Source of the DNA: Asterias rubens
Lineage: Eukaryota
DNA length: 64,000 nt
Direction of reading: 5' to 3'
NCBI RefSeq assembly: GCF_902459465.1
Contig: NC_047070.1
Location: 15,748,001 to 15,812,000 of the forward strand
In this document: positions 4,897 to 64,000 of the stretch, one piece after another
Layout of the letters: each line of letters opens with the position of its first letter
How positions within the stretch are numbered: the first letter of the stretch is position 1
Notes under the pieces: generated by a model
What the model was told of the DNA's origin: nothing
Databases searched by the model: none
Seen by the model: only the letters and a program-made list of their open reading frames with translations
Program-made: the position numbers and the translations under genes

Positions 4897-5162
4897 AAAT
4901 ATTATTAGGCCTACTCAGGCCTATATCTTGGATCTTTCTAGTTTTTATCTGTTTTTCTAAACTATTTTATTTTGTGTTTTTGGTTACTGGTGTTGTTGTA
5001 CTCTTTTCTTTTCCTTGGTGTTTTGTACTCGCTTCCTTCCTTGGTGTTTTTTAATCATGTTTTGGAGATATTATTAAGCATGATATTTTGGATCTTTCTT
5101 AGTTTTGTATCTGGCACTAAACTTATTGAATGCAGCCCGTGTATTTTTCTTCGGGTAGTTAA

Positions 5163-5541
5163 AGGCAATGGACACTATTGGTAATTACTCAAAATAATTA
5201 TTAGCATAAAACCTCATTTGGTAACGAGTAATGGGGAGAGGTTGATAGTATAAAACATTGTGAGAATTGGCTCCCTCTGAAGTAACATAGTTTTCGAGAA
5301 AGAAGTAATTTTCCACGAACTTGATTTCGAGACCTCAAGTTAACAAACTTGAGGTCTCGAAATCAAGCAACTGAAAGCACACAACTTCGTGTGACAATGG
5401 TGTTTTTTCTTTCATAGTTATCTCGCAACTCCGGCGACCAATCGAGCTCAAATTTTCACAGGTTGGTTATTTTATGCATATGTTGAGATACACCAAGTGA
5501 GAAGACTGGTCTTTGACAATTACCAATAGTGTCCAGTGTCT
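5163..5541. mobile_element. TTAA-flanked MITE, family A (AGG...CT termini; T2/Kolobok-like)
   Basis: TTAA at 5159-5162 and 5542-5545. TIRs AGGCAATGGACACTATTGGTAATT / AATTACCAATAGTGTCCAGTGTCT. Several related copies in the window. Confidence 0.85.
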
Positions 5542-30114: not shown

Positions 30115-33100
30115 ATGACCATGGGCAGCAGGTCGTTATTAGTGACAATTGTGATCACAGTAGTCATACCCAGCATCTGGGCAGGTGCAATAGCTGGGGC
30201 TCAAACACAAAAGGTGAGTGAGATACGCTGGGTTGATAATGATATCAATAATTGACGACATTTTTGAGTCACACAATGTCGTCAGTATGATTCCGGACTT
30301 AATATGTGTTTCTGTAGGCCCCCCTAATGGAAGAAAATCAGTATTTCAACAACATAAGTTCTTTTTTTTTTAAATGTATAAAAGAAGCACGGGATAAAAC
30401 TTTCTTGAACCACAATGCATCGGCATTCTTGGCATAAATAACCAACATAATTTGTGGGTCTTTGGCTTCAATTTGTAGGTCGAGTTGACCCAAATATCGA
30501 ATCGTGCTGTTTGAAAAACTGTCCGCCAAAGTTCAACCCATGTTAGTTGACCTTTTGGTGGACACACAGTACCGTAACCGGGGACAAAATCCCCTATGGC
30601 CCGGCTTATTATTGACCGTCGGAACAGCCTTTACGACTTTTGAAGGTTTTGGGGATAGACTTTTGAAGGTTTTGGGGATAGATGGCCAGACCCAAATGAC
30701 AAGTTTCAGAGGTTACATGTTTCTTTGTTGTATATTATAGATCAACTAACCATGAAAACTATTTCATTGTGTTCTATGCACAGATTCGTCGTGAAAGTCG
30801 AGAATCTGGCAAGTACTGGCCAAACTCCGTGGGTATCTCAGACCAACAGCTACGGCAACTCCTAGCACACTCTCTGGCGGACTCGTACAGTACGTCAGGG
30901 GCAAGTCACATACGGGGAGGAGACGGGGATGCAGGGTATATATACGATAGTCGAGATCAGGTCGATGACACGGGGACGAACGAGGAGGAAGGGGAACGCG
31001 TAATCGGGAGCGAGGTTACATCGAGAGACTCGAACCCCGGTACAAGCAAGAGAAATGGGTTCTTCTATGGCAAAAGAAATGGGTTCTTTTATGGAAAGAG
31101 ATCAGCGTCAACCCCTGGCAATGCAAATGAAGTAACTCAAGTGAGTGTATAATGCAATTCAAGTTCTTGAGAATATTATTTCGATTATTTGGCTGTGGCT
31201 AACAGTGCACCTGTATAGAATTACATGTACCAATGCAGCAAAACGTCATAGCTGAACACGCCTTGTTCAATACCTTCCGACATAAGCCAATAGTGAGCGA
31301 CCGTAGGTGTGCTTCTAAATTGCAGCATAGGCTCATGTGGTGCGTATGGCTAGACGTAGAAACCAGGGATGGAGAGTGCAACACCATGAACCCCAAACCA
31401 ACTCACTTAACAAGTAGCTTATTCGCCCCCTCCCCCCCCCCCCTCTACGATCTAGTATTATAAACTTTTGAAATATCTTTATTTATTTTGTTTTTTACAA
31501 TAATAGTACTAGATTAACTGTTATTGTGGTTTATTGCTAAATCTACATTTCCTCTGTCGCTCACAGCAATCTCCAAACTGTGTTAACCATGTTGTGCACT
31601 ATTATGCATAAAACTCCTCATAATTACAAGAAAGACAAGTTTACGGCCGTAATAACAAACTGAAACGACGCCCTCTTGTGACTACTAAATCGCATGTCGA
31701 TTTATGATTCCATTCTCCACCTCCGCCACCTACGCGATATTTCCAGTAGTTCACCCTATCAACAAAACACAAATAAGATGAAAGTAGGTTTGTTTTGACA
31801 ATAGACGCTACCGTCGGAAGTGCCCTTGTTTAGGCGAATCACGTTTTGTTCGCCACGAAGGGACGGAATACGTGCCTACGAACAATCGATGGCCGCCGAC
31901 GATGCGACCAATAGTGGTGGGCGATGGTTCGCTCTAAAATAGCAGAGCATGCAGTGACGTGGCATTGAGCGTCAAACACCATGTAAATAATGGTTTAGAA
32001 AATGGGTCAAAACCCTGACGTGTATATCAATTATAATTTAAATTTCTTCCTAAATGGTTAGCGTAATTAACCGAACAATCAACCTATGTGACGAGGATCT
32101 CTCCCAGTACACGGCTTTCTTATTAAACAAATGCTATTAAATAATCTACCTGTTGGTGAGCAGAGGGGGCGGGATGAACAAAGTGGTATTGGTCAGTGAT
32201 GCATTGTGACCACTAAAAATTAATCATCTACTGATTAATCACCGTCAAAGACAGTCATCGTGTGACGGCAAGCGCGTGACACTCGACAAAATTACTTGAG
32301 AAATGGCACATAATCTGGACAGTGCGTGATATGAAAATACTGTCTGTTCCTAAACGGATTGATTTATAGCCAGTGTACTTTGAATGGGGAGCGGAATTTC
32401 TGTTTGCATGTATGGAAATCACATGTGATTAATTTCAAACAGAACGTGAATTGGATTTCAAAATTCTCACGTGATGTTTGTTTTTTCTTCATTACTTTAT
32501 TTCCCGGTTCCTCTTTGAATCAATCACTTGTCCTTCTTTAAAGGGAGGATGAAACAATAACAGTCTTAAGCCCTTTTCACACTGTATCCATATCCCTTTG
32601 GAATACATCCCTGGGGAGGCCCCAGAGGTTTTTTACCCCACAGCTACCCAGTGCACTTTCGCACTGTCCACTCTGGTCACTATTCCAGGGGGTTCCGGTT
32701 GCCCAAATGAAGACTACCTCGGGGCAGGCTGGGGGTGATTCCCCGGGGTTGGCTCATTTGCAGGTAGATTAGGGGTAAAGCCACTCGCCGTTAATAATCC
32801 CCGGGGTTGCCCCGGGGAATCGTTTTTGTCAACTAATACCTAACGCAGATTTAATCAGCACAGGACTTCCTAATCTTGGATTTTTGTTATTAGTTTGAAA
32901 GAAGAACAAGAGTTTTCTTCATAGACTCGCCTCCCATATTTTTATCAACCCTGGATTTCTCAAAGTTTATGATTTCCTTTCTGTTCTTCTTTCTCTTTGA
33001 CAGTGCATCCCGTGTGGGCCTCAAAACAACGGCCAGTGCGTCATGTTTGGTACATGTTGCAGCTATGAACTAGGTGGCTGCTTTTTCCTGACAGAGGAGG

Positions 33101-33267
33101 CCCTTCCCTGTGTGACGTCAAAATCGTCATCATTATGTGAGCTGAGCGGATTGCCGTGCGGTGACGAGGGATATGGAAGGTGCGTGGCAGACTCTGTCTG
33201 TTGTCTGCCGCAAGAGGGCTCTTGTCATATCAACGCAGAATGTGGAGGCAAGATGACATTTCAATAG
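30115..33267 (+). CDS. NGFFYamide precursor: NGFFYamide (NG peptide, NPS/CCAP-type) neuropeptide precursor with C-terminal neurophysin domain, 239 aa, 3 coding exons
   Basis: Exons 30115-30213, 30784-31140 and 33004-33267, all phase 0 with GT-AG sites. The joined protein has a hydrophobic signal peptide (MTMGSRSLLVTIVITVVIPSIWAGAIAG), an acidic spacer, KR-NGFFYG-KR-NGFFYG-KR (31048-31101) and a 14-Cys neurophysin (CIPCGP...NAEC). The acceptor at 30061 implies an unlocated upstream non-coding exon. AATAAA at 33345 and 34222. Confidence 0.98.
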
Positions 33268-36200
33268 GACTTGCATTATGCGGACTTTAAATTATTTATA
33301 AAGGGATAGGAAAAGGTGGTTAATATCTGTATTTTGAAAAGGGTAATAAAATTTAAGGTTGTTTGAGAAAAGGGACACGAATGTTATTTTGACCTCAATG
33401 TGTAAATTTAAACAATTTTAGCGATTACTTATTTTTAGACCACTACGAATTAACTGTTTTATGTTCTTTACGACGGGAAAGAAATGAAATCTTTTGAGAG
33501 ATTCGAATGTACAAAGAGTGTTATCGTGATGACTTTATTGTTTTATCTTGCGACGTCACATTATTTAAGCAACCTATGTTTAGACAATAGTACAGTCATG
33601 AACAAGTTACCCTCTGACTCGCCAACGAATTAAGGTGTTTTTAACACGTTTTTACGAACAATAACCACTGCTTTCGATCGTCCAATGATTTGCCTCCTTT
33701 TGCCTCAGTGAGGATGCATTTTGGCCTCATCGGTGAGGGCAAATTTTGAGAGTGTGACGTCACGCAAGGGGGTCAAAACGAGTTTCCAATGTTGTAACAG
33801 GGAAGCTACATGGGTAAAATATTGTCGACTGACAGAAGTCTATTGTTCTATTCATGATAGATAACCTATGATAATGTCCACACGGAATTTTTAAAATTAC
33901 TCAAATATTGTCCCAAGAACAAAAAACAATGTCCCCTCCTAGCTCGCTCAAAATTCAACAACATAAGTGATACTCAGAGGAACCTTGTTACAGAAAACGC
34001 CTATGGGTTCAACTCGTTAATTTCAACCGAGGTTTGAATAAGTTCAGAGAGTGCATGACGTTCATTCAGAACGTCGATGTAACTCCCCCCCCCCCCCCCC
34101 CCGCCAATCAATAAAGATGTACCAAAAGAGGTATTTTGGTATATAAAATGCCATATAAATACTGACTCTCTCTCTCTGCAGGTTAAATGACAAAGACAGA
34201 TTATATAATTTTGTTAATGTGAATAAAAATAAGTGTTTAATGATTATCATAATGTAATAGCTTATTTACTTCTAGATTTTCTTATAACATAATTATTAGC
34301 TTCAGGCAGTTACTAATATTTATTTTAGGGGGTAGTGAGTTTCTCCCACACAAATGTTGAAGAATAACATAATACAAAAATTACTGACTAAAACGGTGTA
34401 AGTTTACTTTAAGGGACTATCTTTGGCGTCACTGCGACAACTTCGGTTTGCACGGTTTATCATTCTTTTGTTCATCTGTGACTTCAATGATTACACCGTC
34501 TCTATACTAAATAAGAGACTGTGCGAGACTATACAGTGCGGTAGTAAACACTGTGCGAGATTATAGGCGATGCCGCACGTTATTATCGTTGATCACTACA
34601 CCTGCGATTTACTCTCAGCTTTTTAACAGATTAAGATTTGCCACGAGACTAATCTGTTAATGATACACGTATACCCTGGGAAGCGTTTCCCTTATCGGTC
34701 GTTACATCCCAACATCCATTAAGTAGCAAATCTGTGTGAACAAAATGTTACTCAATTTCTCATCGAAGTTGTAAGAGAAAAATAACAGAAAATACACCCT
34801 TGTTGCACAAATTTGTGTGCTCTCAGATGCCGAATAAAAAGCACTACAAAAACACATCTCTTGTACAAAAATCGTTACCTCAAATTCCAATGGCCCGGAG
34901 ACTGTAGTCTAGTGTCTGTAATTGTTTGGTTATTATGACCTCTTTTGAATGTATACATGCCAACTGTTTTGTTCATTGTCTTGATGTAAACAATAAAAAT
35001 ATATATAATTGGGTTCTTTAAGTTGTATGCTGATGTTATTTTTTTCTGAAAGATCTTGAAGATGAATAAAAATGGTAGGGCGCTGGTCCCCGGCGTCGTG
35101 CCAATGTACAGTGCATTGTCTTATCGTCTGGTTATGTGTGGTCTCCGTCCGAGTACCAGTTTTGTGAAGGCTTCCGTCAATAAGTACGGAATATTAAAAC
35201 AAAAGCTTGTTTAGAGTTGCGTTGTGTGTATTTTGTTTGACTGCAATTATTTCGTATTATCTCGCCAACCATATTTATTTATGCAATACACAAACGCACG
35301 TACCCACATCAAATCTTTGAGCATGTTGCGTCAAACATAATAATGGGTGCGTAGGGGCAGGTGGGGCCGGCAATGGCACGTGTTTAATAGGGAGTGCTGG
35401 CTATTTAACGCATCAAACCACTCATTTGTGTATTTTTAGTTTCGATCTTATGGGGTGGGGTGGGGGGGGGGGGGCTGGTCGATCAAGAGTGGGGCAATGT
35501 GTCTATAAAGCTACCCAGACCATGCCCCTCTCTAGTAACGCATCATGGTGGTTTTAAAACTGATGTGAGTGGCCTCTGCAAATGCTCTCATCAGCCTATT
35601 TGTTGTTTTTCGATTGTATGTCATGCACGGCAAGAGCACTGAAAGTTTGTTTTCCGACAAACTCCATAATAATTGCTTCTGAGGTGGGAAGCATTTTCTC
35701 TGAAGTCTCTGTCAATGATATTTTGAAACAGAACACTCGATTTGTCAGTCCATGATCTTCAATTAGAAGACTTCGAATCCGACCCGTGCATTGAATCAGA
35801 TGGGCAGGGCAAAACAAATAGTTGGAACGAAGAATATGCAAGGTTTGAGGGTATTATACTTGTCTCATATAGACAACTGCTAGAAGATCGTGTTTCAAAT
35901 AAACGGACACTTTTAGCTGGGAGAGGATGTGAGTCGGGTGGGGAGGGGGGCGGGGGGGGGGGGGGTTCTCTGTGCAAAGTGTGCTCCGTTTCACATTACA
36001 GCACTCACTACATTAAACTCATTCACTTATTGGGGGGGGGGTGATATGCAGTCCTCCTGTAATGCTTCGTTTTAAAAGGGCACGGGCACCAAGGCATTTT
36101 ATGTTATCCTCCTTAGTAAATGGCACCCTATGAGGCAATTATACATTTTAAATACCGGCCATTTCAAGGGCACCAAGGCAATGACCATGCAGGTGGCATG

Positions 36201-38519
36201 GGGACAATCGCCTCCTGCCTCCTTGAAGTAGCAGGCCTGGGAATGCGAATTATAAGAAGTTAATTTAAAACCATTTCGTATGCTATAGATGCGGAAGGAG
36301 GTGCCCTGGTTCCTGATCAATTTCTGTTTGTATTGACATAATTATGTTGTTTAGGGGGTGGATGTAGACATTTGTCATCGTTAGAGAAAGTAGATGTATT
36401 CCTGATCGATTTAAAACTTCTGTCATAAAATAACTTAAAATTATTATAAAATCGCTTCCTTATTTCTTCCTTTTCACTGTGGTTTGGATTACACCTGGAG
36501 AGCGGGCAATCACCGGACTGCCTTGTTTTTATGCGTCTGCCTATTTTCATCTCGGCAAAAGCGTGGCTAAGAAATTAAATTCAAGTTAAAACTGAGTGCG
36601 CACCTTTTACTGAATGAAGAGTGTAAAAAGAAAACCACCATTGAGTAAGACCAGGTGCGACGTAGTAATGGTTACGGCATCTTAGACATAGTGGTTTGGG
36701 GATGAATACAGTATGAATACTGACAATTCTCAATGTCTGTGATTGTCGGTACAGTCCTCAGTGATGAGGTGAGGTATAGGATACAATTAAAGACGCAGGC
36801 ACTATTTTCAGAAGTTTATTTTTGATGACACTTTGCGGGTTATTGCTGCTGTGTGTTATATATGGCTACCCGATGTATGTTAATGTATCAAGAAATTAAA
36901 GAATAGTGTCATGTGACGGGAGAGAGAGAGAGAGGGGGGGGGGATTAGAATCACAACCCCGTCTTGACCTACCAAATGAAGTATTCGAAATGCACAAATA
37001 AATGCTCAGATACACCAAAAGCCCCGCCCCTCACCCAATTATTTCCTTACCCCCTCCCCCCCCCCCCCCCCGCGTATGAGAATTTCTACCCACTGGAGAG
37101 CTTTAACATTATCCCCTAGACTTGAATTCAAGTCTGAGACTGCGGTTGTGTCTTTGCATCAGCCACACAGAATTCCCCCGCAGATTCCCTATCACACGCT
37201 CTAACTCGCATCTCTGTGATCGTCGGCCAATGACGAATGTTAATCAACACAATATGTCGTATAGACGCCTTCTTGGGAAGATAATCTAAACAAAGATAAT
37301 CTAATCTAAAATGTCACATAGAGTTACTCAAATAAATTGATAACATTTCACAACTTCTTAATTTTCTTCATTATCAATTTAATGATTTATTATCGAAGAT
37401 CAAATAGAAAAACAAAACTTCTTAAAGATGCTGCTACTAATAATTAAGCATTTATTATAATGATTTATCTTTACATTGCACTGGATTGTCCAAACAAACA
37501 TTATGTATACACAATTACTGTTTATCTATATTGGGTGTATCATTTAAAATTACAATCACTTCAACCATGCTTCAACTATGCTTCAACTCACCGGAATAAC
37601 AATATTTTACAAACAGTAAACCATTTCAAACACAGTTTAGCATACAAATGGGTTCAAATACAGAACAAGTTGCATGATACACAAAACACAACAATCTGAA
37701 AAAAATCGCTTAAATAGCTTGTGTATTTCCTTAGCAAAAATTATCAGGGAACCAGCGACATAATGTTAATTACACACTATTTTGTCTGGTTACCTGTTCC
37801 TGCTAAAGAAGATTGTTTCATGCTAAGCAGGATTATCTAACACGCACCTAGGAAACCAGCTAAGAACAAAGTGATTTTTGACTGGTAACTAGTTCATTGT
37901 TAGTAAATCATAGAAACAAGAACACTGAAAATACGCGACACCCACAGCCATTATCCCACGTACGGTCTTACTACGACCTCAATGAGGGCGCTTTTCACCC
38001 TTGTGACATCATGCAAGGGGGGTCTTAATTATTTATAAATTATGCAAGTGAACCAAAATAATGGATCTCCCATTATTAATGTGCACAGCCACGATCATGG
38101 GTACAACTTTTTGTTCTAAATTTTATGAGGAACAGTTTGAAAACCACTGATGCAGCAGTTTTCTCGATGTTAATTCAATTGAAAGTCGCTGTGTCAATGA
38201 TGAATCAAAAGAGCTTGAGTTTGTCAAATTATATATGTACAAGATCTGCAGCAAAGAATTGCTCAATATTTACATGTTGTCTATTTGGTGTTTTTGTAAC
38301 AAAAAGTAATACCATGATTGTGACTGTGTAATAATTAATTAGTTGCACCTCATACTCAGGTAAAGTGGATGAGCATCTAATAGCAATGTAAAGCAGGGGT
38401 ACATAGACAATATAACAAGGAGGTATGCAAGTATTAGCCAAACAATGTCATGTCATGTACACCAAGAGTGTCACAACATGGCCACAATAAGCTATTAGTG
38501 AGTAACATTTGAATGATGT

Positions 38520-39017
38520 CCGGTGTGGCGGTTTCAGTCTTCCGCCGTGTTCAGTTTTCCGGGTGACGTAGCCAGACATTTCACCACAATGTTGGAACGG
38601 TTTGAGCTTTCCGGCGTGTTCAGTTTTCCGGGTGACCTGTCACATACTGCCGCGAGTACCCTGGCGAATACTGTAGTTCTCTCAGCAGTGACCCCCAAAT
38701 TGTTTATTATTACGATTCTTTTCTGTGTAGTCACATAATCTCTTGCCCCATCTTTACATGTATTCATGGGTACAACTTTAGGCAGGTCACACTCTGCTTG
38801 CATAAAAAACAACTCATACGATCCACGCGTTTGCCGCTAGTTGTACTCGACTCGTGGACGCCGCCATAACAGCTACCGGAGGGTAATGGATGACTCAATA
38901 CGGCACTAAAAATGGTCTACTTTCGCTTGCTGTGCGCAGGCATCGCATGACGTAATGCTACCGTATTTGGTCATTCGGAAAACTGAACACAGCGGAAAGT
39001 TGAAACCGCCGCATCGG
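38520..39017. mobile_element. Non-autonomous DNA transposon with ~40-bp TIRs
   Basis: CCGGTGTGGCGGTTTCAGTCTTCCGCCGTGTTCAGTTTTCCG and its imperfect reverse complement ending at 39017; the terminal motif is duplicated internally near 38578-38634. Confidence 0.7.
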
Positions 39018-40802
39018 GTACAATGCCTTGCTCAGTCACAATTCAATGCTCAGTTTGGAGTTTCTCAGACTCCATCAAGTTTAGCTATGTCACATCAAAG
39101 ATGACACCCATACACATCAACTTGAGCATTATTTGTGATCTAAACATGCATTGTACCAGACATCAATCAAATCTAGTATGAAGAAATAACTGGCATATCA
39201 CTGGAACAATAATGGGGGCGGAGATATGGGGTATCAATCACCCCCCCCCCCCCCCCCCCTTTTGATCATTATGTACAGTATGGCCAGTCTAAAAGTGTAG
39301 ACCTAAGCCTTAGAAACTGTATATACCAGCTTAAGAACAACAAGTAGCTAAGTACAACAAAAATATGATGCTCATTTCTGCTTAGAAAATTGTTCAGCAA
39401 TACTTTCTGCTAAAAAGAAGTTCTATGAAATTTGGCCCTGCATATAACAAGTTGAATGCCCCCTTTCCAATGCAGCAACCTAAGATCCACCCACTTGCCT
39501 ACATGTACACCCCTTGACAAGGAGCGTAGTATAGGACCTACTGTTTGATGTTCAGACTCACCAAACTGAAGATTCATGGAAGGTAAGATTAATCAATTGT
39601 TGTTAAATGGAACTGTGTGTTGTTTTCTTTGCATAAACCTTACTACATCATACCCTACTTGTAATTTTGTAAACAACCCGACAATTTTCTTGGAGCTGTT
39701 TTGTGCAAATGCTTAGAGTGTGGTAACCAACCAACGTGGCCATGTTTTGTATGGTGTGAGGTTCCTTGCTCTAGACCTATGCTTAGTTGGCTATAGTTCA
39801 ACGAAGAGGAAGTAGTCTTAACAGACTAATATGTAACTGCCAACTACAGTCTCCTACAATTGGTTTTTATAACAAATTAATAGCACCACACTATGGATGG
39901 TAAACAATGGATATTATATGGAAATTTGAACACAAACTACAAGAACATACACTCTTAGTTATTATGGCATTGTGACCTTTATCAATAATGTCACTTGAGT
40001 TTGTTTCCTAAACAAATCTAAAAATAATGTTTTATTTAAGTGTCATTGAAGACACTGGTTCAGCCATGCTAGAAAAAAAGGTTTTCTTTCGACTATAAAC
40101 CAGAAATAGATAACTGAAATAACTTTTTCCTTCAGGGTTTGTTTATAAATGAAGGACTTTTATTTTTAAAAGTCAACATTTGGGGAGTTGATAGTATCAG
40201 AACTCTTTTGTTTTCCACACTTTCGATTTGTTAATTGTTTGTGTGGCTTTGATGTGAACTGGTCTAATTTTTTTAAATATTTATACTTTACCACTTTACA
40301 ATCAATTTACACCTTTTATCAAGCTAATATATTTTGTATTTATATACATACGCGCAAACAATATACAAACAAACTTTAAATACATGTTCAAAATGAATCC
40401 CAAAAGATATATATTTGTATAAAAAAAAGTGAAATATTATTATTTAGTAATGATCAGAATGTGGTCCAATTTTTAGTATTAAAACTCCACAGCCAGCATA
40501 CTAGGGACATACTTTCATAGTTGTTGTATTCACATGACATCACAAGACTCCAATTTCACACTGGACCACTAGCCCTGAGGCCAATGATTTTAACAACGGG
40601 CCAGTAAACTCATGACGGGACAAGTCCAATGATAAGACTGTGTTTTTCATTTGAATAATATTACCCCACTCTGTAATATGTTTTTTAAACAAAATGAAGC
40701 GATGTTCAAATGTTGACTTTCGAGGCTAGTAAAAAAAACCTGTTAACTCTGTCCAGTCATGGAGGTACCTCCATGGTCCAGTATAAAAATGTAGGCCTTC
40801 AA

Positions 40803-40992
40803 AAGCCCCTTTCACACGAGAGTAAATTAGCAAAGGTCCCTTGCTTAATTGTAGCATGGTTGTAAAAATTTCAACTCGTGTAAACCTTTTTTTACTGTCC
40901 AAGTTTCCTTGTAAAATATTGTCAAACATTGCATCATTTTACAACCATGCTAAAGTTAAGCAAGGGACCCCCCAGTTAAAGTGCTGTCGTGT
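40803..40992. mobile_element. Palindromic MITE (Harbinger-like termini, tentative)
   Basis: GGTCCCTTGCTTAATTGTAGCATGGTTGTAAAA / TTTTACAACCATGCTAAAGTTAAGCAAGGGACC inverted arms. Confidence 0.55.
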
Positions 40993-42378
40993 GAATAAGG
41001 ATTCTCATACAAGGCAAATGAGATAAATCTTCTCTTAATGCTTGTACAAACCAAAGTAGTTTTCATGTTACACTTGAAAGCTCTTAGACATTAAGATTTT
41101 GGTCCCATAAGATTGTGAATCTACATTGCAGTCTTGTTTTTTTTATACCCAAATTCGAGCCCTCCGTCAGGGTCAAATTTCATAGAACTGCTTAAAAGCA
41201 CAAAAGCTGCTAGGAAAAAAATAACATTTGGCAAAGTGACTTCCACAATGCAAACATCTGATTCGAACAGTAGAATAATGTCATATCTCATTATTAAAAC
41301 TATTCTATTTGAACACCATGAAATTGAGAACTCATGTCAGCTGGTTAGAAAAAAATCCAAGGTCATTTAATGTCCGCTATGCATAATTGTGTGTCCATTT
41401 ACTGCATAAATTATGGTTCAAATCACAAGTTTTAAAGTTACTTCCTGACACAATCTACCTATGTGGACAATGTTGTGACAACGCTATACAGTCAGGAGCT
41501 CTCCACAATCAAAGACTGCTTCTGCAAGAACACTGTTCATGTGCAAGGCTGCCCCAAACAGCGATCAACAGTCCTGCGAAAAACATGGCCAATGTTGCGA
41601 GAATTGCAGAGAGAGTTGGAATGCTTTGATTCCGACAAACAATTAATGACTTGTCAACAAGTCTAGACTCCGTCCATCAGCGGGGATATACAACGCCATT
41701 GTAAAGCTTAAATAATTAATAGCATAAATTATTAGAATATTTAATATCATTTACAATCAATGTGAGATAATATTGCTTACTACAAGGGGTCTACAGAAAA
41801 TGTATAAAAATGCATAAAATATATGTACTTTCACTTTCATCCCAACCATTAAATTTGCCACCAAGGTGCATATTTCTGCAATTGAGATTCCAACAAGAGC
41901 AAATTCAAGAGCAAATGTGTTCCGTTTAAGTGTGACCACTTCAATTTGTGAATCCATTGTTGGTTGCTCTGTATAAAAGTTAAAATACTTTATCATGTAT
42001 CTACCTTTCACCAATTGCTAAGTTCCGCTATCATACATACATGAAATAATTTTCTCTGCATAAACAATTATCATACATTCTACAATGACACATACAACAT
42101 ACGTGTGTGCCATTTTTCTTGTTCAATCTGTGAACCTGTACAACATGTAAAGTAGGAATGGTGGGTTTATAAAAAAGTGCATAATATGTAGAAGACTGAA
42201 ACAAACAAATTCACTTCAATCACATTCTCTCTCCGAAAGTATGCAGGCATCTTCTTCTATCCCTACTTAATAATTACACCAGGTCTTCATTCCACAAAGC
42301 ACTAAAATTCATCTTAAGATGAGTTGTCAACATTACCATTGCCATTTATATTGTGTCATCGCACTTTGTTCAGCAACA

Positions 42379-42622
42379 AAAGGGACTGTGATGTACAGAC
42401 AAAGCCCTTTTAGCATTTAAAGGGGCTGTGATGTACAGACACAGCCCTTTTAGCATTTAAAGGGGCTGTGATGTACAGACACAGCCCTTTTAGCATTTAA
42501 AGGGGCTGTGATGTACAGACACAGCCCTTTTAAAGGGGCTGTGATGTACAGACACAGCCCTTTTAGCATTTAAAGGGGCTGTGATGTACAGACACAGCCC
42601 TTTTAAAGAGGCTGTGATGTAC
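42379..42622. repeat. Minisatellite, ~6.5 units of 40/33 bp, each an internal hairpin
   Basis: AAAGGGGCTGTGATGTACAGACACAGCCCTTTTAGCATTT; units start at 42379, 42419, 42459, 42499, 42532, 42572 and 42605. Confidence 0.9.
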
Positions 42623-43278
42623 TTTGTACAGTCTCTTGCCTGCTTTGATCATGACAATACAGCCCCTTTAAGATTGATAGGCCCCCCTAACATCAATCTT
42701 AGCTCTTCGTGAAATTGATCCCAGCATGAGAATGTTGTGAATCATATGTTTTTGCTTAGTTAGAAAAAGTTGAAAGAAATAACATGAAGGAGAAAACATC
42801 TTTGTATATTACGATTCTCGGACAGTTGATTTGTCTTTGTTAATATGTAAGTTATAAGACTCTGCAGCACTTCATCATATAACGTCAGCTTGGTTTAGAA
42901 CACCGATTCATGAAACAACTTGGGCATCAACAAGGAAATTTGGCACTTGTTATGTACTTGTTACATATTTCCAGTAGTATGTGTGTTTGCTTATCGTACA
43001 AAACCTAGATTCTTTTTAGTTTAAAGAAGGTACTTTTTTAAATGCAGCATTTCAGATTATATTATTTCCAGAGATGACTTTCACGTGTACTCATGATGGT
43101 TGTATTTAATCACCAGTCACAAATCCAGTACTTTATCTTCAAACATATATTTTTTCAAATGTAATCTCTCTCTTAGTTATTGCTATGTTTGTTTTCTAAG
43201 CCCTTATTGTTCTAAGATCACTGTTGGTTTCTCAATGTACCAAGCCGACGTTACATGTAAAGCTTTAAGTACAACGCC

Positions 43279-46200
43279 CTATGTCTTGTAGAATTTAATG
43301 ATGTCATGAATTGGCGCTCGGCAGAGAGGGCAAGGGTCTCCCCTCTCTTTAAGTTTCACCCCGCAGGCAAGGCAACAACAGATGTGGCCGCAGCGGTAGA
43401 ACACCGCATCAGGGAGATTCTCAAAGCATACTGTGCATTCGTTGTCTTGTCTTAGAGGCGGTTTGTTCGGACGAGGGGGTGCTTGCCGACGGGACTTACC
43501 CTGACTGCTACCCCCCTCGCTAGGTTTAGCTTTAGAAGCAGCAGACATTGAGTGAAGTCTTGGAGGAGGGGTTGGAACCTTCTCAAGATCTTCTACATGT
43601 AATGCAAAGGCAGCTGCACCTTCTGCTTCATCAAATATACTCACATTGATATCATTGGTTGCATCCCAGTCAGTCTGTGATGGCACTGGAGGTGGAGGGC
43701 TGTTTTTAAGGGCACCTGCAAGAACAAAAGTAATTGATTTCTAATTAGATTATAAAGTGGTTTATTGTATATGGCGCATATCTGTCACTCCTGCAAGGTA
43801 TGGGGACTACGTTTGAATTATTAGACCCAATCCTTGGTGTAGTGTTCACGTGATCACACTGTAATACATGTAATGTTATACATTTATGCAAATGAGTTGG
43901 CCTCGTGTAAGAGTACATGGAAAGGGGTGGAAAACCGAGGAACGGAATAAAGACACATGTTGATGCACATAAGATTGAATTCGTCTATAGTATTGGTTTA
44001 ATCCGTATGTCTAGTAAGACTCTACACTTGGCATCATGTAATGGTTTACATGGTAATGTAATGGTTTAAGGTGCTGTGGTGCAATATGCTGCCAATCTAA
44101 CCAGGAACACCGGGCAAACCCCTTCTCTTTACGATAAGTGCACTGGGTTCTTTGCACTGGGGGGGGGGGGGAAGTTTCCTCCCATTGGACCCCAGTTTAA
44201 ATCCCAACTCAAACATGTCAAACTGGAGCATTGCATGTGGATTGGGTTTTCAGTCTCTACCTGATTGATGGCTTTTCCCCCTTTCCTCCTACCTAAAACT
44301 GAGCATTTCTTCTTGTTTCCTACTCATCCTATTATTGACACTACTTGTGCTGTTGGATGAATTATCAAATCAAATTTTAAAAACATTAATACTCATCTAA
44401 AGAAATTGTTTACTAACCTAAGATTTTGATTGTCTGAGTGGTGCCGTACAAGTCAAAGAACATCCAGAGTGGTGTGGACGTATCAACGTGCATCAAGACT
44501 TTATCGCTAGCACCCTCCGGTCCAGTCATGTGAATCCTACCATCCTCATCGATTGTGAACCCTAAACTAGCTCCTTCTTCTAGCGTGTCGTAATCCCTGG
44601 TCATGACCCAGTACTCCTTACGGTCACAGACGTCTTCCGCCTCAAGAGGTAAGGTATCTGGGTCCAGACTCTCTGGATCGCATGACGTCAAACCGACACC
44701 CATATGTCCGATATAGCAGTGGTTGACCGTCATAACCTTCACCATGATCTTCTCATTAAACTGGATGGGCCGACTGGTGAAGACTAACCCACCGCTGACG
44801 GTAGTCGCTTTGCGTTCTGCTACAAATCTCTCCTCTTCGAGTACAATGTTACAGCCGTGTTGACTGTGCAGTGGTAGTGGGTCGGGCTTGAGAGCATTGG
44901 TACGTGTTCCGCTCGAACCTTGGAATGGAACCTCCTGGCTACTACTACCACCACTACCAGGGACTAGGTCCGAGACCAAGCGTAGTGGGTCCAAGAATCC
45001 AGACACAGACGAGGCACCTCTTGTCGATATCCGGTTGGATGTTGGGAAGGTATCTATAGAGTGGAGGAACATAGAACAATTATTCAGTATCTTCAACTTA
45101 ATGTTTATGCAGTAAAATAACAAAGTTTTAGAATCATCTTGATTCTCTGTTAGAGGATCGCTTTCAAATGCAACAAGATACAAACAAACACATGTAACTG
45201 TATCTTCAGAAATTATACAGCATGAAACTGCCTTGGAAGGAAAATATACAGTTATGAACTAATTAAAATAGGGAGACCATCACTACAAGGATGTGTTTTC
45301 AAGGTAGAATTACCAACTGTTATGGATGAGTTGGCCATTGGTTGATCACTAGAGAAGGACCAAAACAGTTTTTGTTTGCAGCCGTAAAAACGCTTCCTAG
45401 GGCTAGTTAGCTCAGTTTGTAGAGCACCAGCACATTAATCTGGCGGTCACAGGTTCTTCAAGTCCCAACTCTAATAAATTTTGTCTTTGTTCAACCATGT
45501 CATTTTTCCTAAACTGTTATCTCTAGACACAATGATTACCCAAAACTTGAGCTTACCAACAATTCTAACTCCAGTTGTGTTACCATAAACATCAATTACT
45601 CCCCATACAGGCCTCGATGTGTCTACTCCATTGAAGAACTCCATAAATGGTTCTTGATTAACGCTATAATACACCGTCCCATCTTCACTTAGGACAAAGT
45701 TCAGCACATTGCCATGCTTTGCACAGTTTTCTCTCAGAGCTTTTGCCCAGTTCCCTGCCCTTCCTGTCAGGTCTGGACATGCATACTTAGGGATCCCGTT
45801 ACTACGCATAGAAAATGGATCTTGTGAGGTGTAACCGAAGCGTAACACCCCGCTCCATCCAGCTGTGTTCTGGATTAGTTCAAAGTGTAGGATCTCGCCA
45901 ATGTGTATCGCTCTGTGAGTGAACACCAGGGCGTTGCAGAAACTTCCCATGCGAGATGCTGTTTTGTGGTCAGCCGACAATACGATGTTCTTGCCATGGA
46001 TTGTATGGAAGTGGAAGTCACTGTGGTGTTGTGAAACTGCTGGTTGAAGCATTGAGTCTAGAGGTTGGAGCACATCGTGAGGCCAGCTGGCTCTTCCAGG
46101 TTGTTGCGTAGTACCACGGTAGGTTCTGTTGGGCTTTGCTCTGTAGCCACTTGATGATGCACTAGTGCTTGTGGTTCGTCTGCGTTCTGGTGCCGAGTCT

Positions 46201-47408
46201 GGTCGGGACCTACTCGAAGCCTGCTGACTCGTGCCAGCTGTTGAAGAATGCGCTGGTGGGAAGTAAATATAAAAGAAAACAAACAAATTCTTTATTATGT
46301 TTAAATCTACAAATATAATGGCAAGCCAAGAGAGATCCTGTCTCATTGAAAATATGTTCATACATCACGAACTGATTGTGCTCATTTTATATTTTGTGTT
46401 TTAACTATACCCTTTACTTTTAAGGAAACAGAGGTCATCCCTTTATCGCTGATGCTTCTTTCCCCAATTATTACAAATAAATGGCACTATGGACTTAGTA
46501 TGAGTAGCCTAGGTAATGTATTGTAGATAAACAGAACCGCATTGTCATGTGTGGTTCTGTGCGCACTCATCATGTGACACCCCCATAATTCCCTTCATCC
46601 ATCTACACATCTACGCTGGTACTCAGCAAAGTCTACTTCTGGATGTAAAAGCTGAGGCGAAGACAAGGCGCGCATCGATGGAGCAGGTACACAAAGTTGT
46701 AGATACACCATAGAGTTATATATAAGAACTAGAGGGCGCACTGGCCTATTTACGCGCCCCGACATGCGCGCAGGCGGTCATTTTGTGTCACAGCTTGTGT
46801 TTGTGCGCCCATTTTGTAAGTTGAACAAAAAGCATCTGGAAAAAAACTCAAACGTGTATTTCATATTCAACGCGCGCACAGAATGACGCTTGTCATCTTG
46901 CGGTCCCGTCGCGTTTGTGCAAGCAATAGCAGCATCACCAGTGCGCCCTCTAATTCTTATAAATTACTCTATGAGATACACAGAATTATGTCATGTGGTC
47001 ATGTGACAGCATAAATCCCTATAGGCTATAATATAAACAAACTAAATTTGTAATGACTTAATTATCAATCAACTTTCTTTAAAATTAAATTAAAGGCTAG
47101 AGAAAACAAGCAGATCAGCAGTGAGTAGGCTTTTGCCTTCTTACTTCTTTATTTGTGACTTGCCAAGAAAATGAAGATGAGATTGGGTCTTTAATTAGGC
47201 AGAAAATAATCAGTCTAATCTGTTAATCATGGTTTAATTGGCAGAAAAATTTAATAGAAAATATAAATCGAATTCGAATACATCGGCAGACTAGCAACGA
47301 TTTGTAAACATTTTATCTGTAACAGACATGATTAAGATTATAATATAAGCTTGATTTACCTCTGTTGCCATGGTTAGAATTGGACACCGATGACGAAGTT
47401 TGTCCCAT
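43279..47408 (-). CDS. NEURL1: Neuralized-like E3 ubiquitin ligase (2 NHR domains + C-terminal C3HC4 RING), ~605 aa, 4 exons
   Basis: Exons 47408-47360 (MGQTSSS...), 46252-45557 (NHR1: FHFHTIHGKNIVLS...WGVIDVYGNT), 45053-44418 (NHR2: ...LWMFFDLYGTT) and 43715-43279 (RING CTVCFENLPDAVFYRCGHICCCLAC...CPLCR). All introns phase 1; total 1818 nt, open frame. Confidence 0.95.
45401..45496 (+). mobile_element. Short tRNA-derived SINE or tRNA pseudogene; related copy at 62611-62690
   Basis: A box TAGCTCAGTT, disrupted B box, shared 3' tail CTCTA.TAA.TTTGTC.TTGTT.AACC; the cloverleaf is not intact. Confidence 0.7.
46709..46973. mobile_element. hAT-type MITE in NEURL intron 1
   Basis: ~36-bp TIRs CATAGAGTTATATATAAGAACTAGAGGGCGCACTGG; perfect 8-bp TSD AGATACAC at 46701-46708 and 46974-46981. 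Confidence 0.85.
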
Positions 47409-47930
47409 GTTCAAATCAAGGAGAAATTCGCCCGATTTCTCGCTTTCTAAATGATGTTTTAATGAATCATGTTGTGAAAAAAATCCGTCTATCTTCTTCC
47501 TTTATTATGAACTTTAGCTAAAAATAAACAGCGCCCTCTACCAGTTTATGGCCATCTTCCCACTCAGGGGGTGTCACTCTTTGAGAAAAAACGCAGTCAA
47601 ATGGCGATAATGTTAAATTAGTATCACCTGTAAATTAATATTAGTCTGACATAAATACAATAAATATGATAAATTCTATCAAAAAAGAATATGCTTTTAC
47701 ATATATTTTTTGTAAACACTGATTTAAATTCACAAAATCAAATACTTATTTGAAATGGGGTGTGCTCCGTGCTGTACCTTTTTTCTTTGCGTGAACTTTG
47801 ACCCAATGCCGTCCGTGTACAAATTTGACATCGAGAGAGAAGTGACACGGCGGCGAGCTTTGCGTAAGATTCTGCGAAATTGTACCGAAACGTTCACCAG
47901 AGAGGCAGGGAAACGACTGGATTCGTCAGG
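47409..47930. promoter_or_regulatory. Probable bidirectional promoter between NEURL and TEX261
   Basis: Divergent start codons only 522 bp apart; CTCF-like CAGCGCCCTCTACCAG at 47529-47544. Confidence 0.6.
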
Positions 47931-50900
47931 ATGTGGTTTTTAATCATACTCAGTTGGTTAGCCACGTTTGTGCATGTCTGCCTGGCCACTTTGGCACTTG
48001 GTAAGAATTATACGTTTTTCACGATATTGGTGCAATTGACAACGCCATCCCATTACCCCACACACACAGGCCTAATTCATTGTAATTCCCCAACTAATGA
48101 ATTAATTACATTTATAGCTCTTTGTTTTTTACTATTTCTATCGCCACCCTACTCAACTGTCTGATATCCAACACAACTGACAGAATTATGTCGGTCAAGT
48201 TACAAAAAGAAATACAAATTAATTACAAATTTCCTCTTTGTTGGTTTTGGGACTTTGCTTTGTTAAAAAATTAATTAATTAAACATTTATTGAATTAATT
48301 CATTCATTAAATTTTAATTTTTCATGTAATTGATATATTCAAACAACAGATTTGTTAAAAGGTTGGAAAATATCATGATTGTGTGTATCATTGAAATAAC
48401 TGTAGATCAACAAGTAATATTATATTATTATATTATTAAATACAATATCAATTCATACAAATCTGACAATGACACTAGCTAGGCTACTTATTAAACTTTT
48501 AAAGGGAGGTATTGAGAAAACTTTTCATATTCTGCCACCTCTTTTTCATTGTTTTATTTGTTTGTATTCACTTAACAAACAAGATATTCTTTTGAAGTTA
48601 AAAAGATGAGTGAACAATTGGTGGCAGGATCCAGAAATCTTTCTAAATGTGAAAATTTTGAGCTCAACTTAGCTTAGGCTTACAGTACACCAAAAATAAA
48701 CCAAGTTAAAACCATACATGGGATTTAACCAGTTTTATTAACAATTGGTTCATTGATTGAAAAGTTTTTTTCATCAATGAGCATGAGAAGTTGTTGCGAA
48801 AAACTGTTTCAGCTTTTAAATACCCTGTTTCAACCAAAATCACTTGGAGGAAAATGATTTATTACCATGAATTGGTTAGTAGCATGATTGCTTGTTATGA
48901 TATGATGTCCTTTTCTAATTTCAGCTGCTGGTCTGTACTATTTGGCAGAGTTAGTTGAAGAGTACACAGTTATTACTATGAGAGTCATCAGATGGCTTGT
49001 TGCTGTAAGTATATCAACAGTCTTTCCGTTAACTTGAAAGAACGAGGTGGGGGATGGTTGGTAAACAAAAGTTCCATTCCTCTGTAATCCTTTTTGTAAG
49101 TGTAATGTGGTTCTACTTTAACCCACACCTAAGCTTTATACAAGATGCCCATTGATTACCAGAAGCCCATATGACTTGCAAGTTGCATTCATGAGCTTTT
49201 TTTGTCTTGAGCATTTAATTATACAAGAAATCAAACAGCCCTTTTGAGATATAGTGACACTGGAAGTGCTCTGTTTGGTTTGGGTTTAAACATACAAATC
49301 TTGTTGGAATTTAACTGAGTGTCCAAGTTTTCCACTTTCAATGCTTTTACACTTAAACGACAGATAAAACGGGTGTCCAACCTTTAATCAGGTGTCCAAA
49401 AGACACCCAAACACCCCTCTGGGTAACACTAGATGCCTGCCGCAACGACTCACCGTCAGTTTAGAGCAGTGCTCCTCCTGGTCACTACAATTTCCTTGTA
49501 AAGATGCCTTTTACGCAGGAGAAAATGCCTTGCTGCCCTTGCCCTGTAAATACCAAAGCATGACCTTGAACTTTACTGTGGAAGGGGCACAGTAATGTCC
49601 CTCTGGTAAGCGGCACTTCTAGCTGAGGAAAATGTCAATTTGTATTGGAACCTTGCAAAGGGCACCACAGCAAAAGCACAGGCATGGAAGCAATTGCTAT
49701 GTGTGCCATAGGTTATTTCAAGAACTGCAATGTTTCAAAAGTGTATCCTTCCTTTCTTGAAGTTATTGTCCACAACTATTGACACCTGACTTGTTATTAT
49801 TCTGTCTTCATAGATCACAGCAGGAATCTACGTTGGTTTGATCATCTTTGAAGACTTCCCGTACTATCTGACACTTACAGGATTAGTTTCAATTGGATTC
49901 TACTCTTTACTGCTCAAAACTTTCCCGTTCATAGAGCTGTCTTCACCAGTCTTTATTCTTAGTTGCGGTAAGTTTATTCTACAGTGGAACAAAAGTATCT
50001 GTAAAGAAGCTTTGTTGGATCACTTTTTTAGTACAGTTTTGTATTTGATTACTGTTTTGGTCTAGTTGGTATGGTATGACACTGCTCTAGAATTGCAAAG
50101 GTCGTGGGTTCAAATCCCACCCGAGTAAAATGCCTGTGATTTTTCACAGGACTCGGGGAAAGTACTGAGTATACAGTGCTACACACATCGGTGTATATGG
50201 GTAAAAACCAAAAATTAATAATTACTGTTTTGTTGTAAAGATTTATTTTTATTTTTATTCCTTATTTAATTTGGTTTATCATCAACTCAAATATCATTTA
50301 CACACCATCCATTGATTTTCAGTTATATAAAACTTGCATCTTTATGCTTTTTTCTGCAGTATTAGTGATTGTAAATCATTATCTAGCGTTCCAGTATTTT
50401 GCAGATGTGTGGCATCCATTTTCAGAGGTAAGCCTACATGTCTAAAACTGTACCAAGTACAGTTGGGCCCTCCATCCTGGGCCCAATTTCATAGAGCTGC
50501 TAAGCACCCAATATTTGCTTAGCATGAAATTTCTTCATTGATTCAAACAGGATTACCAACCAAATTTCCATTTGTTGTTTATTGCTTGTTACTAGTATTC
50601 AGCTATTGTTTGCTTATCCTGGAAATCACTTGGAAATTTGGTTGGTAATCCTGTTTTTATCAAGGACAAAATTTCATGCTAAGCAAATTTTTGTGCTTAG
50701 CAGCTCTATGAAATTGGGCCCAGGTCTTATCTCATGGGGCCCTTGTCATTGCGCGGTGTGCGCTTCAGCAGGGATGGTTGCTATATAATACATATGATTA
50801 TTATTATACACATTATTATGATTTATTTGGCCAAGATTTCAACTTACTTGCAGCAAAACCTAGAAAGAAATACTTGTTCCTGTTCTGCTTCTTATGATGT

Positions 50901-51714
50901 AATGGAAAAGTCATAAAAAGAATTTTCAACAAACAAATCTAAAATCAAGATCTAAATCAAACATGTTTATGATTATCTATTATTATCAAAATTGTTGTAC
51001 AGTTCCATCTCTTGATGAGTTTGTTTGTTCTTGTTGATTCTTCAAGGTGATAGCATATTTCACGATGTGCCTTTGGTTGGTACCATTCGGTTTCTTTATC
51101 TCACTGTCAGCAAATGATAACATTCTCCCAACAACACACATGCCTGCCACTGAAGGAAGTAAGTACATGATGGCATAGACTGCCTACTATAGATGGATTG
51201 CACTATTGGTTCATCATCCATAGTGTTTGATGAAATAGGCACGCGTGCAAGGCTATCATTGGCTAAGAGCTGTGCGTAGAGCGTACACGTATGCACTTTT
51301 GCATTGTTTATCATCAGATATGGCGGTTGATGCGCTTAGTGCAATCCATCTATTGGTTTACCCTTAAAGGTTGAAATTATTTTGAACAGTCAATTGTCAT
51401 CAGAACTTGACAGTTAAAGGTTGGTAAATTTTCTTTCAAGTTGGGGGGGGGGGTAGATTTCATCTGGTTTAGAAATTCTTATCCAAGATGCCTAAAATCT
51501 TGGAGGTAAAAGATGCATCCTGATTTGATAAGCCAAGTTTTTTTTTTTCATGTTTAAATTTATTTTCACTGTGTTTCTCTTTGTTATCTCTGCAGAGAAA
51601 TCAGATGATCTCGTCACAAGCTATTTCAACAAGAAAAGTAAACGCAGTGGGATTCTATCGGTATTTGACATGCTTAAGGATACAATCATCCCAGAGAGAA
51701 CTAAGCGTTTCTAG
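47931..51714 (+). CDS. TEX261: TEX261 / Svp26-family ER-Golgi cargo receptor membrane protein, 200 aa, 6 exons
   Basis: Exons 47931-48000, 48925-49004, 49814-49967, 50360-50427, 51047-51158 and 51596-51714 join in frame (603 nt): [38 protein letters not shown]...VNHYLAFQYF...[31 protein letters not shown]...ERTKRF. This matches the recalled family motifs [10 protein letters not shown] and NHYLAFQ. Confidence 0.95.
50060..50220 (+). mobile_element. tRNA-derived SINE with a 12-bp TSD; related copy at ~63157-63296
   Basis: B box GGTTCAAATCCC. TSD ATTACTGTTTTG at 50048-50059 and 50221-50232. Shared ACACTGCTCTAGAATTGCAAA...CCCACCCGAGTAA...ACTGAGTAT. Confidence 0.8.
50476..50724. mobile_element. 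Foldback MITE in TEX261 intron 4
   Basis: TIR CCTGGGCCCAATTTCATAGAGCTGCTAAGCAC; near-palindromic over most of its length. Confidence 0.8.
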
Positions 51715-63600: not shown

Positions 63601-64000
63601 GTCCTTAAGAAAGACCCTTCACTGTAATTGATGAGTATTTAGGCCATCAGCTACGAGTACAAGTGTCTGAGTGTCGAGTTAACAGAAGAAATACTTTTAA
63701 ATTCTTCTTCTAACCAACGATGTCTAGCTTCAGTCAGACAGAAGGCAGGCCAGGAAATTTGTTCTTGAGGAAGCACAGCAGTTTCCTCTAGTAAAGGAAT
63801 ATGAGGAAAATGTAAATTTTGTATTAGAACTTTGCAAATGGCACCACAGCAAAAGCACAGTGCACCATAGCAAGTGGCTGTGGGTAATTAAGAGGCCTAA
63901 GAAGGAATCAATTTTTCAGTCAGGTTAAATAGTAAAGTTGCAAAAATATTTTGTTGTATTTTTAAGGGAGTGCCAAGTCTTCTATGGTCGTTGCCGAAGA
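60700..64000 (+). CDS. ENO4: Enolase 4 (sperm/ciliary enolase-like protein), 5' partial, continues beyond the window
   Basis: Exons 60700-60858, 61513-61641, 62134-62324, 63351-63490 and probably 63967-64000+ join in frame. AVKFYKENGIPERLEEILNSMFYENPPDVYGRL, followed by the enolase N-terminal motif AREVLDSKGQPTVQAEV. Confidence 0.9.
61144..61475 (-). mobile_element. tRNA-derived SINE, near full length, in an ENO4 intron
   Basis: On the minus strand: tRNA-like head with B box GGTTCGATTCCC, central GGTTTTCC...CCGGTTTTCCTCCCC block and (TTA)n tail. Confidence 0.8.
62732..63099. mobile_element. MITE family A-related copy in an ENO4 intron
   Basis: TTAA-AGGGAAGGTACAC...GTGTACCTTTCCT-TTAA; interior similar to 24957-25336. 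Confidence 0.8.

Follow-up and report, generated by a model that had tools for sequence, protein, structure and literature searches.

Does the genomic position of the gene for the NGFFYamide (NG-peptide) precursor in the starfish Asterias rubens tie it to the region that houses NPS in vertebrates? The question is raised by a window of 64,000 nucleotides (contig C10, positions 15,748,001-15,812,000; 0 N), across which the order of genes is NGFFYamide precursor (+), NEURL (-), TEX261 (+), ANKRD53 (-) and ENO4 (+). The original prediction had read this order as an ancestral deuterostome neighbourhood that was split by the vertebrate genome duplications, and had taken it as receptor-independent support for orthology of NG peptides and NPS. 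The analysis described here partly supports that reading: its direction was right, the five-gene unit was overstated and the concept is not new. We consider it very likely that the window lies on a chromosome derived from an ancestral linkage group, which carried NK, Vax and Emx homeobox genes together with a neuropeptide cluster and was split in vertebrates, and this agrees with NG/NPS orthology. The only tightly conserved block within the window is ENO4/ANKRD53/TEX261, an old deuterostome block.

All five genes were found at the predicted positions, in the predicted order and on the predicted strands by Pfam matches, tblastn and exon open reading frames (ORFs) (Table 1). The precursor of Asterias amurensis matches the exons of the NG gene with 94-99% identity per exon (tblastn). 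The encoded product has the signal peptide, the NG-motif peptides ending in Gly between dibasic sites and the C-terminal cysteine-rich neurophysin of an NG precursor, and a 24-bp tandem at 31046-31101 comprises both copies of the KRNGFFYGKR peptide. Further, the proteins matched by HMMER across the whole library were NG precursors, which came from starfish, brittle star, sea urchin and hemichordates. The starfish genome as a whole has just two neurophysin loci, the NG gene and asterotocin, and C10 carries both.

Stronger evidence than the five-gene block itself is provided by the sequence upstream of it. The NG gene belongs to an array of four neuropeptide precursor genes that spans ∼180 kb (C10:15,601,064-15,781,267) and reads asterotocin (-), ArCRZ (-), ArGnRH (+) and NGFFYamide (+). 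The members are ∼55-60 kb apart, and the spacers between them are without long coding ORFs. Asterotocin is a vasopressin/oxytocin (VP/OT)-type precursor; a gene of this type, proposed earlier as one to look for on the NG chromosome, is thus only ∼170 kb from the NG gene. The peptide encoded by ArCRZ has been confirmed previously (PMC4923880). The array links a VP/OT-type gene to GnRH-family and NG/NPS-type genes, as in the GnRH/VT/NPS paralogon, which corresponds to chordate ALG 7 of Putnam et al. in the usage of Roch et al. (2014).

The remainder of C10 (20,558,067 bases, or 4.9% of the 417.6-Mb assembly) carries part of the marker set of that paralogon. Thirteen of the 95 homeobox matches in the genome are on C10, and by their sequence we read these homeodomains as Lbx, Msx, NK4, NK3, Hhex, Hmx, NK1, Vax, Emx, Not and Nk6. 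The Vax gene, also proposed earlier as one to look for on the NG chromosome, is at 17.397 Mb, and Emx is at 17.570 Mb. The genes read as Hhex, Hmx and NK1 are at 15.43-15.53 Mb. Of four single-locus markers chosen beforehand, three (COE, MGMT and Vax-Emx, but not EPTP) are on C10, for which the binomial probability is ∼5e-4.

Four homeobox genes are located directly upstream of asterotocin (C10:15,434,696-15,561,067). Three of these are the genes read as Hhex, Hmx and NK1; the fourth, left unclassified, has the homeodomain KKRKLRTTFRKEQVEYMEKYFKISMYLNILDRKELAVQLGLEETQV. PMC10532012 draws DOCK1 directly next to the VP/OT gene; this arrangement was rejected for C10, where the DOCK_N gene is 4.5 Mb off. 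The first DOCK_N exon at C10:11,078,232 recurs with an exact score on an unplaced contig (C103:28154-28261), which is probably an uncollapsed haplotype. Long open frames built of tandem repeats, with units such as VEFEPRYTHKNKMTRRQSIHQLHSLDVC and ...GNILTVVRCNTAIFLMFLLQAVPP..., occur at C10:15,704,952-15,705,539 and 15,843,028-15,846,710; these are probably satellite-like repeats, not genes.

We compared the window with other genomes by reading the neighbours of ANKRD53 and of the NG gene within 10 kb. The triplet ENO4/ANKRD53/TEX261 is complete in Strongylocentrotus purpuratus, Acanthaster planci, Amphiura filiformis, Ptychodera flava and Glandiceps talaboti, and in each of these the gene for an enolase of 579-595 aa is head-to-head and the Erv26/TEX261 gene tail-to-tail with ANKRD53, as in the window. 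Because the triplet recurs in the same orientation across deuterostome genomes, its order in the window is not due to chance. In amphioxus (Branchiostoma floridae), the enolase/ANKRD53 pair is kept; in the turtle Gopherus, the convergent ANKRD53/TEX261 pair is kept without the enolase. The head-to-head ENO4/ANKRD53 pair from echinoderms to amphioxus and the convergent ANKRD53/TEX261 pair in turtle together indicate that vertebrates split one ancestral block. Thus, an ancestral deuterostome neighbourhood that was divided by vertebrate duplications stands for the linkage group and for ENO4/ANKRD53/TEX261, but not for the five genes as a unit.

The product of the ankyrin gene in the window is identical to a 501-aa NCBI protein of A. 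rubens that is labelled 'synphilin-1-like'; judged by its sequence, this gene is an ANKRD53 orthologue. Three lines of evidence support the assignment: the family is set off by a clean gap, turtle ANKRD53 and the window gene are reciprocal best hits, and a gene tree agrees. In the family search, ANKRD53 proteins from Trichoplax to turtles had E ≤ 1e-39, whereas generic ankyrin proteins had E ≥ 1e-28. Turtle ANKRD53 and the window protein are 31% identical over 70-79% of the query, and, when the turtle protein was queried against the starfish genome, exon 2 in the window was best (E 6.6e-22; runner-up 5.9e-9). The gene tree, which the original prediction had called for, follows the species tree, with support of 100/100 for the family branch and 100/99 for the chordate clade.

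In vertebrates, the counterparts of the starfish genes are found in several regions. GnRH2 adjoins VT, OT and PTPRA; GnRH3 is located among DOCK1, FAM196A, FOXI2, CLRN3, PTPRE, MKI67, MGMT and EBF3; and GnRH1 adjoins DOCK5 and, in chicken and gar, also SLC4A5 and MTHFD2 (PMC6135963). Human NPS is <500 kb from DOCK1, FOXI2, CLRN3, PTPRE and MKI67 at 10q26.2 (PMC5264598), and human ENO4 maps to chr10:116.88 Mb, where it adjoins SHTN1 at the VAX1 locus (PMC6305670). Set beside these GnRH1, GnRH2 and GnRH3-NPS neighbourhoods, the starfish array resembles a single, unduplicated equivalent of the three. We take human ENO4 to be at 10q25.3, and ANKRD53 and TEX261 to be next to each other at 2p13.3, close to VAX2. 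Of the genes that flank NG, the human orthologues are presumably either 11-24 Mb away from NPS or on a different chromosome (2p13), and the five-gene block alone is therefore evidence at the level of the chromosome only.

The link between NG and NPS by synteny is known from amphioxus, and the starfish extends that work. Roch et al. (2014) reported that the VT, GnRH-like and NPS-like genes of amphioxus are side by side and that human NPS is in a "ghost GnRH3" region of chromosome 10 (PMC3969558). Semmens et al. (2015) cite the amphioxus VP/OT-NG tandem (PMC4422128), and Zandawala et al. (2023) presented the synteny of amphioxus and Drosophila anew, covering GnRH, CRZ, NPS/CCAP and VP/OXT (PMC10321317). 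A 2023 paper drew the genes around the VP/OT gene of A. rubens, put it on chromosome 9 and left other neuropeptide genes unmentioned (PMC10532012). Accordingly, the receptor-independent support claimed for NG/NPS orthology agrees in direction with our results, but it had already been published from amphioxus (PMC3969558; PMC10321317). In the literature covered, outside of which subscription journals fall, we came across no description of either the four-gene array in starfish or the split triplet. What is new here is that an ambulacrarian has all four neuropeptide genes in one array, and that ENO4/ANKRD53/TEX261 serves as a marker joining 10q25 and 2p13.

Like the cluster on amphioxus scaffold 36 (VT, a GnRH-like gene now regarded as CRZ, and NPS-like), the starfish array has VP/OT-type, GnRH-family and NG/NPS-type genes as neighbours, and, like that cluster and the human GnRH paralogon of chromosomes 5, 8, 10 and 20, it matches the GNRH1, GNRH2-OXT-AVP and ghost GnRH3/NPS segments. 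It differs in that the species is an ambulacrarian, that both a GnRH-type and a CRZ-type gene are between VP/OT and NG, and that the genes are spaced by ∼55-60 kb instead of being immediately adjacent. The papers on the amphioxus cluster are without the starfish flanks, which are Hhex-Hmx-NK1 on one side and NEURL-TEX261-ANKRD53-ENO4 on the other. At the vertebrate GnRH2-VT/OT locus (human 20p13), the GnRH-family gene is linked to VP/OT, and at the GnRH3 locus (10q26.2) it is linked to NPS. As at the GnRH3 locus, the starfish MGMT, EBF/COE and DOCK genes share a chromosome with the neuropeptide cluster; in contrast to the vertebrate GnRH loci, the starfish has one unduplicated array, from which MGMT, COE and DOCK are separated by 4.5-14.7 Mb instead of ∼2 Mb at most. 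In sea urchin, the genes for the NGFFFamide receptor and a VP/OT-type receptor are adjacent (PMC4422128), like the starfish array a relic of the tandem duplication that gave VP/OT and NG/NPS/CCAP, although the starfish case concerns ligand precursor genes joined by a GnRH/CRZ pair. The NK homeobox cluster paralogon (human 10q24-26, 2p13, 4p16, 5q35 and 8p21) is said to have been described by Pollard and Holland in 2000 and by Luke et al. in 2003. Lbx, Msx, NK4, NK3, Hmx, NK1, Nk6, Hhex, Vax, Emx and Not, whose counterparts mark these human regions, are shared by C10, but the starfish ties the homeobox set (classes assigned by eye), the neuropeptide cluster and ENO4/ANKRD53/TEX261 together within one invertebrate chromosome.

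How much of the five-gene order is old depends on where NG is found in other ambulacrarians. In Glandiceps, one chromosome carries both NG (at 10.62 Mb) and the triplet (at 14.94 Mb), 4.3 Mb apart; in Ptychodera, NG is at 13.3 Mb and the triplet at 30.6 Mb of the same chromosome, 17 Mb apart. In Lytechinus pictus and Diadema setosum, NG and ANKRD53 are very probably on one chromosome, their contigs being equally long. The comparison of microsynteny thus showed a triplet that is kept in ambulacrarians but an NG gene that is far from it in hemichordates. One could still argue that the whole five-gene order is ancestral to deuterostomes and that hemichordates moved NG away secondarily: the order exists in A. 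rubens, the triplet is ancestral, and wherever it was tested in ambulacrarians, NG is on the chromosome of the triplet. However, the separation by 4.3 and 17 Mb is seen in hemichordates of two families, no neuralized gene is within 10 kb of NG in Glandiceps, Ptychodera or Diadema antillarum, D. antillarum has no called gene at all within 10 kb of NG, and NG beside NEURL or TEX261 has been shown in Asterias only. We therefore regard this as an unlikely account, and the five genes as one ancestral unit are not borne out: because in hemichordates NG and the triplet are linked no more closely than by a common chromosome, the five-gene order is not shown to be ancestral. No VP/OT-, GnRH- or CRZ-like exons were found within ±10 kb of NG in Diadema, Glandiceps or Ptychodera, which is uninformative at the starfish spacing of 55-60 kb.

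A further objection would be that the match to the NPS region reflects generic conservation of chromosomes and that NPS is a vertebrate novelty, or an altered VP/OT duplicate in the same paralogon, rather than the NG orthologue. The flanking orthologues are presumably 11-24 Mb away from NPS or else on 2p13, an NG orthologue cannot be told from a VP/OT duplicate by synteny alone when both belong to one cluster, and NPS precursors are without neurophysin (PMC5818035). Yet NG peptides activate NPS/CCAP-type receptors (PMC4422128), SFRNGVamide of amphioxus is identical to the N terminus of NPS, and NPS is at the GnRH3 locus just as NG is beside GnRH/CRZ genes in starfish and amphioxus; we consider this reading improbable. 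The possibility that the synteny arose by chance from a handful of gene names we count as refuted. The claim did begin from only four flanking genes with human positions taken as background, but three of the four markers chosen beforehand are on a contig that makes up so small a part of the genome, four related neuropeptide genes are within 180 kb, and the block is conserved in six genomes (five triplets and the amphioxus ENO4/ANKRD53 pair). An ancestral linkage group thus remains the explanation that we prefer, and the following points weigh against it. Given the hemichordate distances, the close order of the five genes either is not ancestral to Ambulacraria or has been lost in hemichordates. 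In amphioxus, no TEX261 is within 10 kb of ANKRD53, and in scallop, neither an enolase nor an Erv26/TEX261 gene is beside it; given the scallop, the triplet may be deuterostome-specific. The EPTP (LGI-type) paralogon marker, whose orthology is uncertain, is on C7 and not on C10. Finally, the human positions of NEURL1, TEX261/ANKRD53, the NK genes and HHEX are background knowledge rather than the output of a tool, the homeobox classes on C10 were assigned by eye, and a bidirectional promoter between ENO4 and ANKRD53 is something that we infer.

We posit that the ancestral linkage group would have held VP/OT-type, GnRH-type, corazonin-type and NG/NPS-type genes along with NK, Vax and Emx. NGFFYamide is the last of the four-gene array, followed directly by NEURL, TEX261, ANKRD53 and ENO4. 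At the scale of the chromosome, NG, the neuropeptide cluster and the block are kept together in echinoderms and hemichordates; at close range, ENO4 is held head-to-head with ANKRD53, probably via a shared short promoter, with ANKRD53 tail-to-tail with TEX261, and regulatory elements in the gene-poor spacers would bind the array together. In vertebrates, two genome duplications followed by reciprocal gene loss would have spread these genes. NEURL1, ENO4, VAX1, EMX2, HMX2/3, NKX1-2, DOCK1, NPS, the lost GnRH3, MGMT and EBF3 would have come to 10q23-26; TEX261, ANKRD53, VAX2, EMX1 and GnRH1 to 2p13/8p21; and GnRH2, OXT and AVP to 20p13, with remnants of the linkage group also at 5q35 and 4p16. 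NPS in the GnRH3 copy would then hold the place that the NG gene has in the invertebrate cluster.

A bolder proposal, which we put forward only tentatively, is that the starfish array is an intact remnant of an urbilaterian tandem array that gave rise to the VP/OT, NG/NPS/CCAP, GnRH/AKH and corazonin ligands, possibly from one ancestral precursor, and that its spacers contain shared regulatory elements. If so, the ligand array would mirror the common origin of the receptors, all of one superfamily, with ligands and receptors duplicated in step, and shared or interlocked regulatory elements in the 55-60 kb spacers would have kept the array together for >550 million years.

Table 1. Features of the window and of contig C10. 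Positions without prefix are counted from the first base of the window; those marked C10 are positions on the contig.
Feature	Position	Strand	Remarks
NGFFYamide (NG-peptide) precursor	30115..33267	+	three coding exons; tblastn, Pfam
NG exon 1	30115-30216	+	signal peptide, MTMGSRSLLV...
NG exon 2	30781-31146	+	KRNGFFYGKR, two copies
NG exon 3	33001-33267	+	neurophysin domain plus stop; Pfam Hormone_5, E 1.8e-8
NEURL (neuralized-type E3 ligase)	43279..46364	-	two Neuralized domains and RING; short 5' exon not located
NEURL RING exon	within 43279-43740	-	zf-C3HC4_3, E 1.4e-13, C-terminal
NEURL NHR2 exon	within 44416-45258	-	Pfam Neuralized
NEURL NHR1 exon	within 45474-46364	-	Pfam Neuralized
TEX261 (Erv26 family)	47931..51714	+	approximately six small coding exons; head-to-head with NEURL
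ANKRD53 orthologue	55104..58662	-	four coding exons, 501 aa; convergent with TEX261
ANKRD53 coding exons	58390-58662, 57739-57942, 57128-57298, 55104-55970	-	tblastn, 96-100% identity
ANKRD53/ENO4 spacer	58663..60699		∼2 kb between divergent start codons
ENO4-type divergent enolase, 5' part	60700..64000	+	continues to ∼C10:15,816,480, ∼4.5 kb beyond the window
ENO4 exons (included)	60700-60912, 61513-61647	+	start of Enolase_N; exon ORFs
Asterotocin (VP/OT-type)	C10:15,608,879 (peptide exon); C10:15,601,064-282 (neurophysin exon)	-	peptide exon CLVQDCPEGGKR; 139-147 kb upstream of the window
ArCRZ exon	C10:15,662,120-452	-	peptide HNTFTMGGQNRWKAGGKR
ArGnRH exon	C10:15,717,236	+	sole match in the genome to the ArGnRH peptide pattern
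Lbx, Msx, NK4, NK3	C10:14.39-14.57 Mb		homeodomains by eye
Vax	C10:17.40 Mb		homeodomain by eye
Emx	C10:17.57 Mb		homeodomain by eye
Not, Nk6	C10:1.8-2.2 Mb		homeodomains by eye
COE/EBF	C10:1.0-1.1 Mb		single gene in the genome
MGMT	C10:5.06 Mb		single gene in the genome
DOCK_N gene	C10:11.08 Mb		one of two in the genome

Between the NG gene and the triplet is NEURL, the predicted product of which matches the NEURL1-type architecture of two neuralized repeats (NHR) followed by a C-terminal RING; the name reflects this architecture and not a direct comparison with vertebrate sequences. Its two Neuralized domains have E values of 1e-41 and 5.7e-41 (Pfam), and no other locus in the genome has two NHR side by side, the remaining NHR genes carrying one or many repeats. 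A tandem array of ∼3-6 copies of a 40/73-bp unit (window 42379-42622) lies ∼660 bp downstream of the NEURL stop codon, and its unit contains a short inverted repeat, AAAGGGGCTGTG...CACAGCCCTTTT. TEX261 is identified by Erv26 matches on three of its exons (48912-49031, 49814-49981 and 50954-51163; E 8e-12 to 2e-5), and, with no Erv26 match elsewhere in the genome, it is single-copy. A scan of the whole window with Rfam at the gathering score matched no family.

The ENO4 exons have weak Enolase_N and Enolase_C matches in Pfam. Against solved animal enolases, an ENO4 exon scored 23.5 bits, compared with 111 bits for its homologue in the canonical enolase gene on C19, and the enolase that adjoins ANKRD53 in six other species is 578-595 aa long. 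We named it ENO4 because it is a long, divergent second enolase, that is, by elimination and architecture rather than by direct comparison with vertebrate ENO4. The head-to-head arrangement with ANKRD53 is kept in the six other species, with spacers of 0.56-1.26 kb between the called genes, and the spacer is a putative bidirectional promoter for both. An RFX X-box as the element that keeps the two genes head-to-head was rejected for now: across the spacers of seven species there was no consistent motif, only two single matches with 1 mismatch against 0.15-0.73 expected. In amphioxus, the ENO4-type gene (B. floridae CM022889.1) hosts a nested gene on the opposite strand that encodes a 476-aa protein with LRR and Ig domains (locus positions 4528-5958).

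Directly downstream of ENO4 is a multi-exon gene on the minus strand (C10:15,818,927-15,824,172) with the dinucleotide-binding motif YDAIIIGAGHNGL and the C-terminal motif GLYLCGSGAHPG. From its GxGxxG and C-terminal motifs we tentatively read it as PYROXD2, which in human is presumably at 10q24.2. Six of its exon ORFs gave no Pfam match, a search against the PDB gave none either, and a weak Amino_oxidase-like atlas lead was the only other indication.

Because neuropeptides are short and fast-evolving, ties between their families are hard to prove, and gene position is therefore valuable as independent evidence. Overall, the results strengthen and extend current views and overturn none of them. 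An array of VP/OT, corazonin, GnRH and NG/NPS genes in a non-chordate deuterostome moves the conclusion drawn from amphioxus back to the deuterostome ancestor, and the starfish locus provides a clean, unduplicated reference for human 10q26 (NPS and the lost GnRH3), 20p13 (GNRH2-OXT-AVP) and 8p21/2p13 (GNRH1). ENO4/ANKRD53/TEX261 offers a compact example of reciprocal loss after genome duplication, ENO4 having presumably been kept on 10q25 and ANKRD53-TEX261 on 2p13, and the triplet is a candidate for microsynteny held together by a shared promoter.

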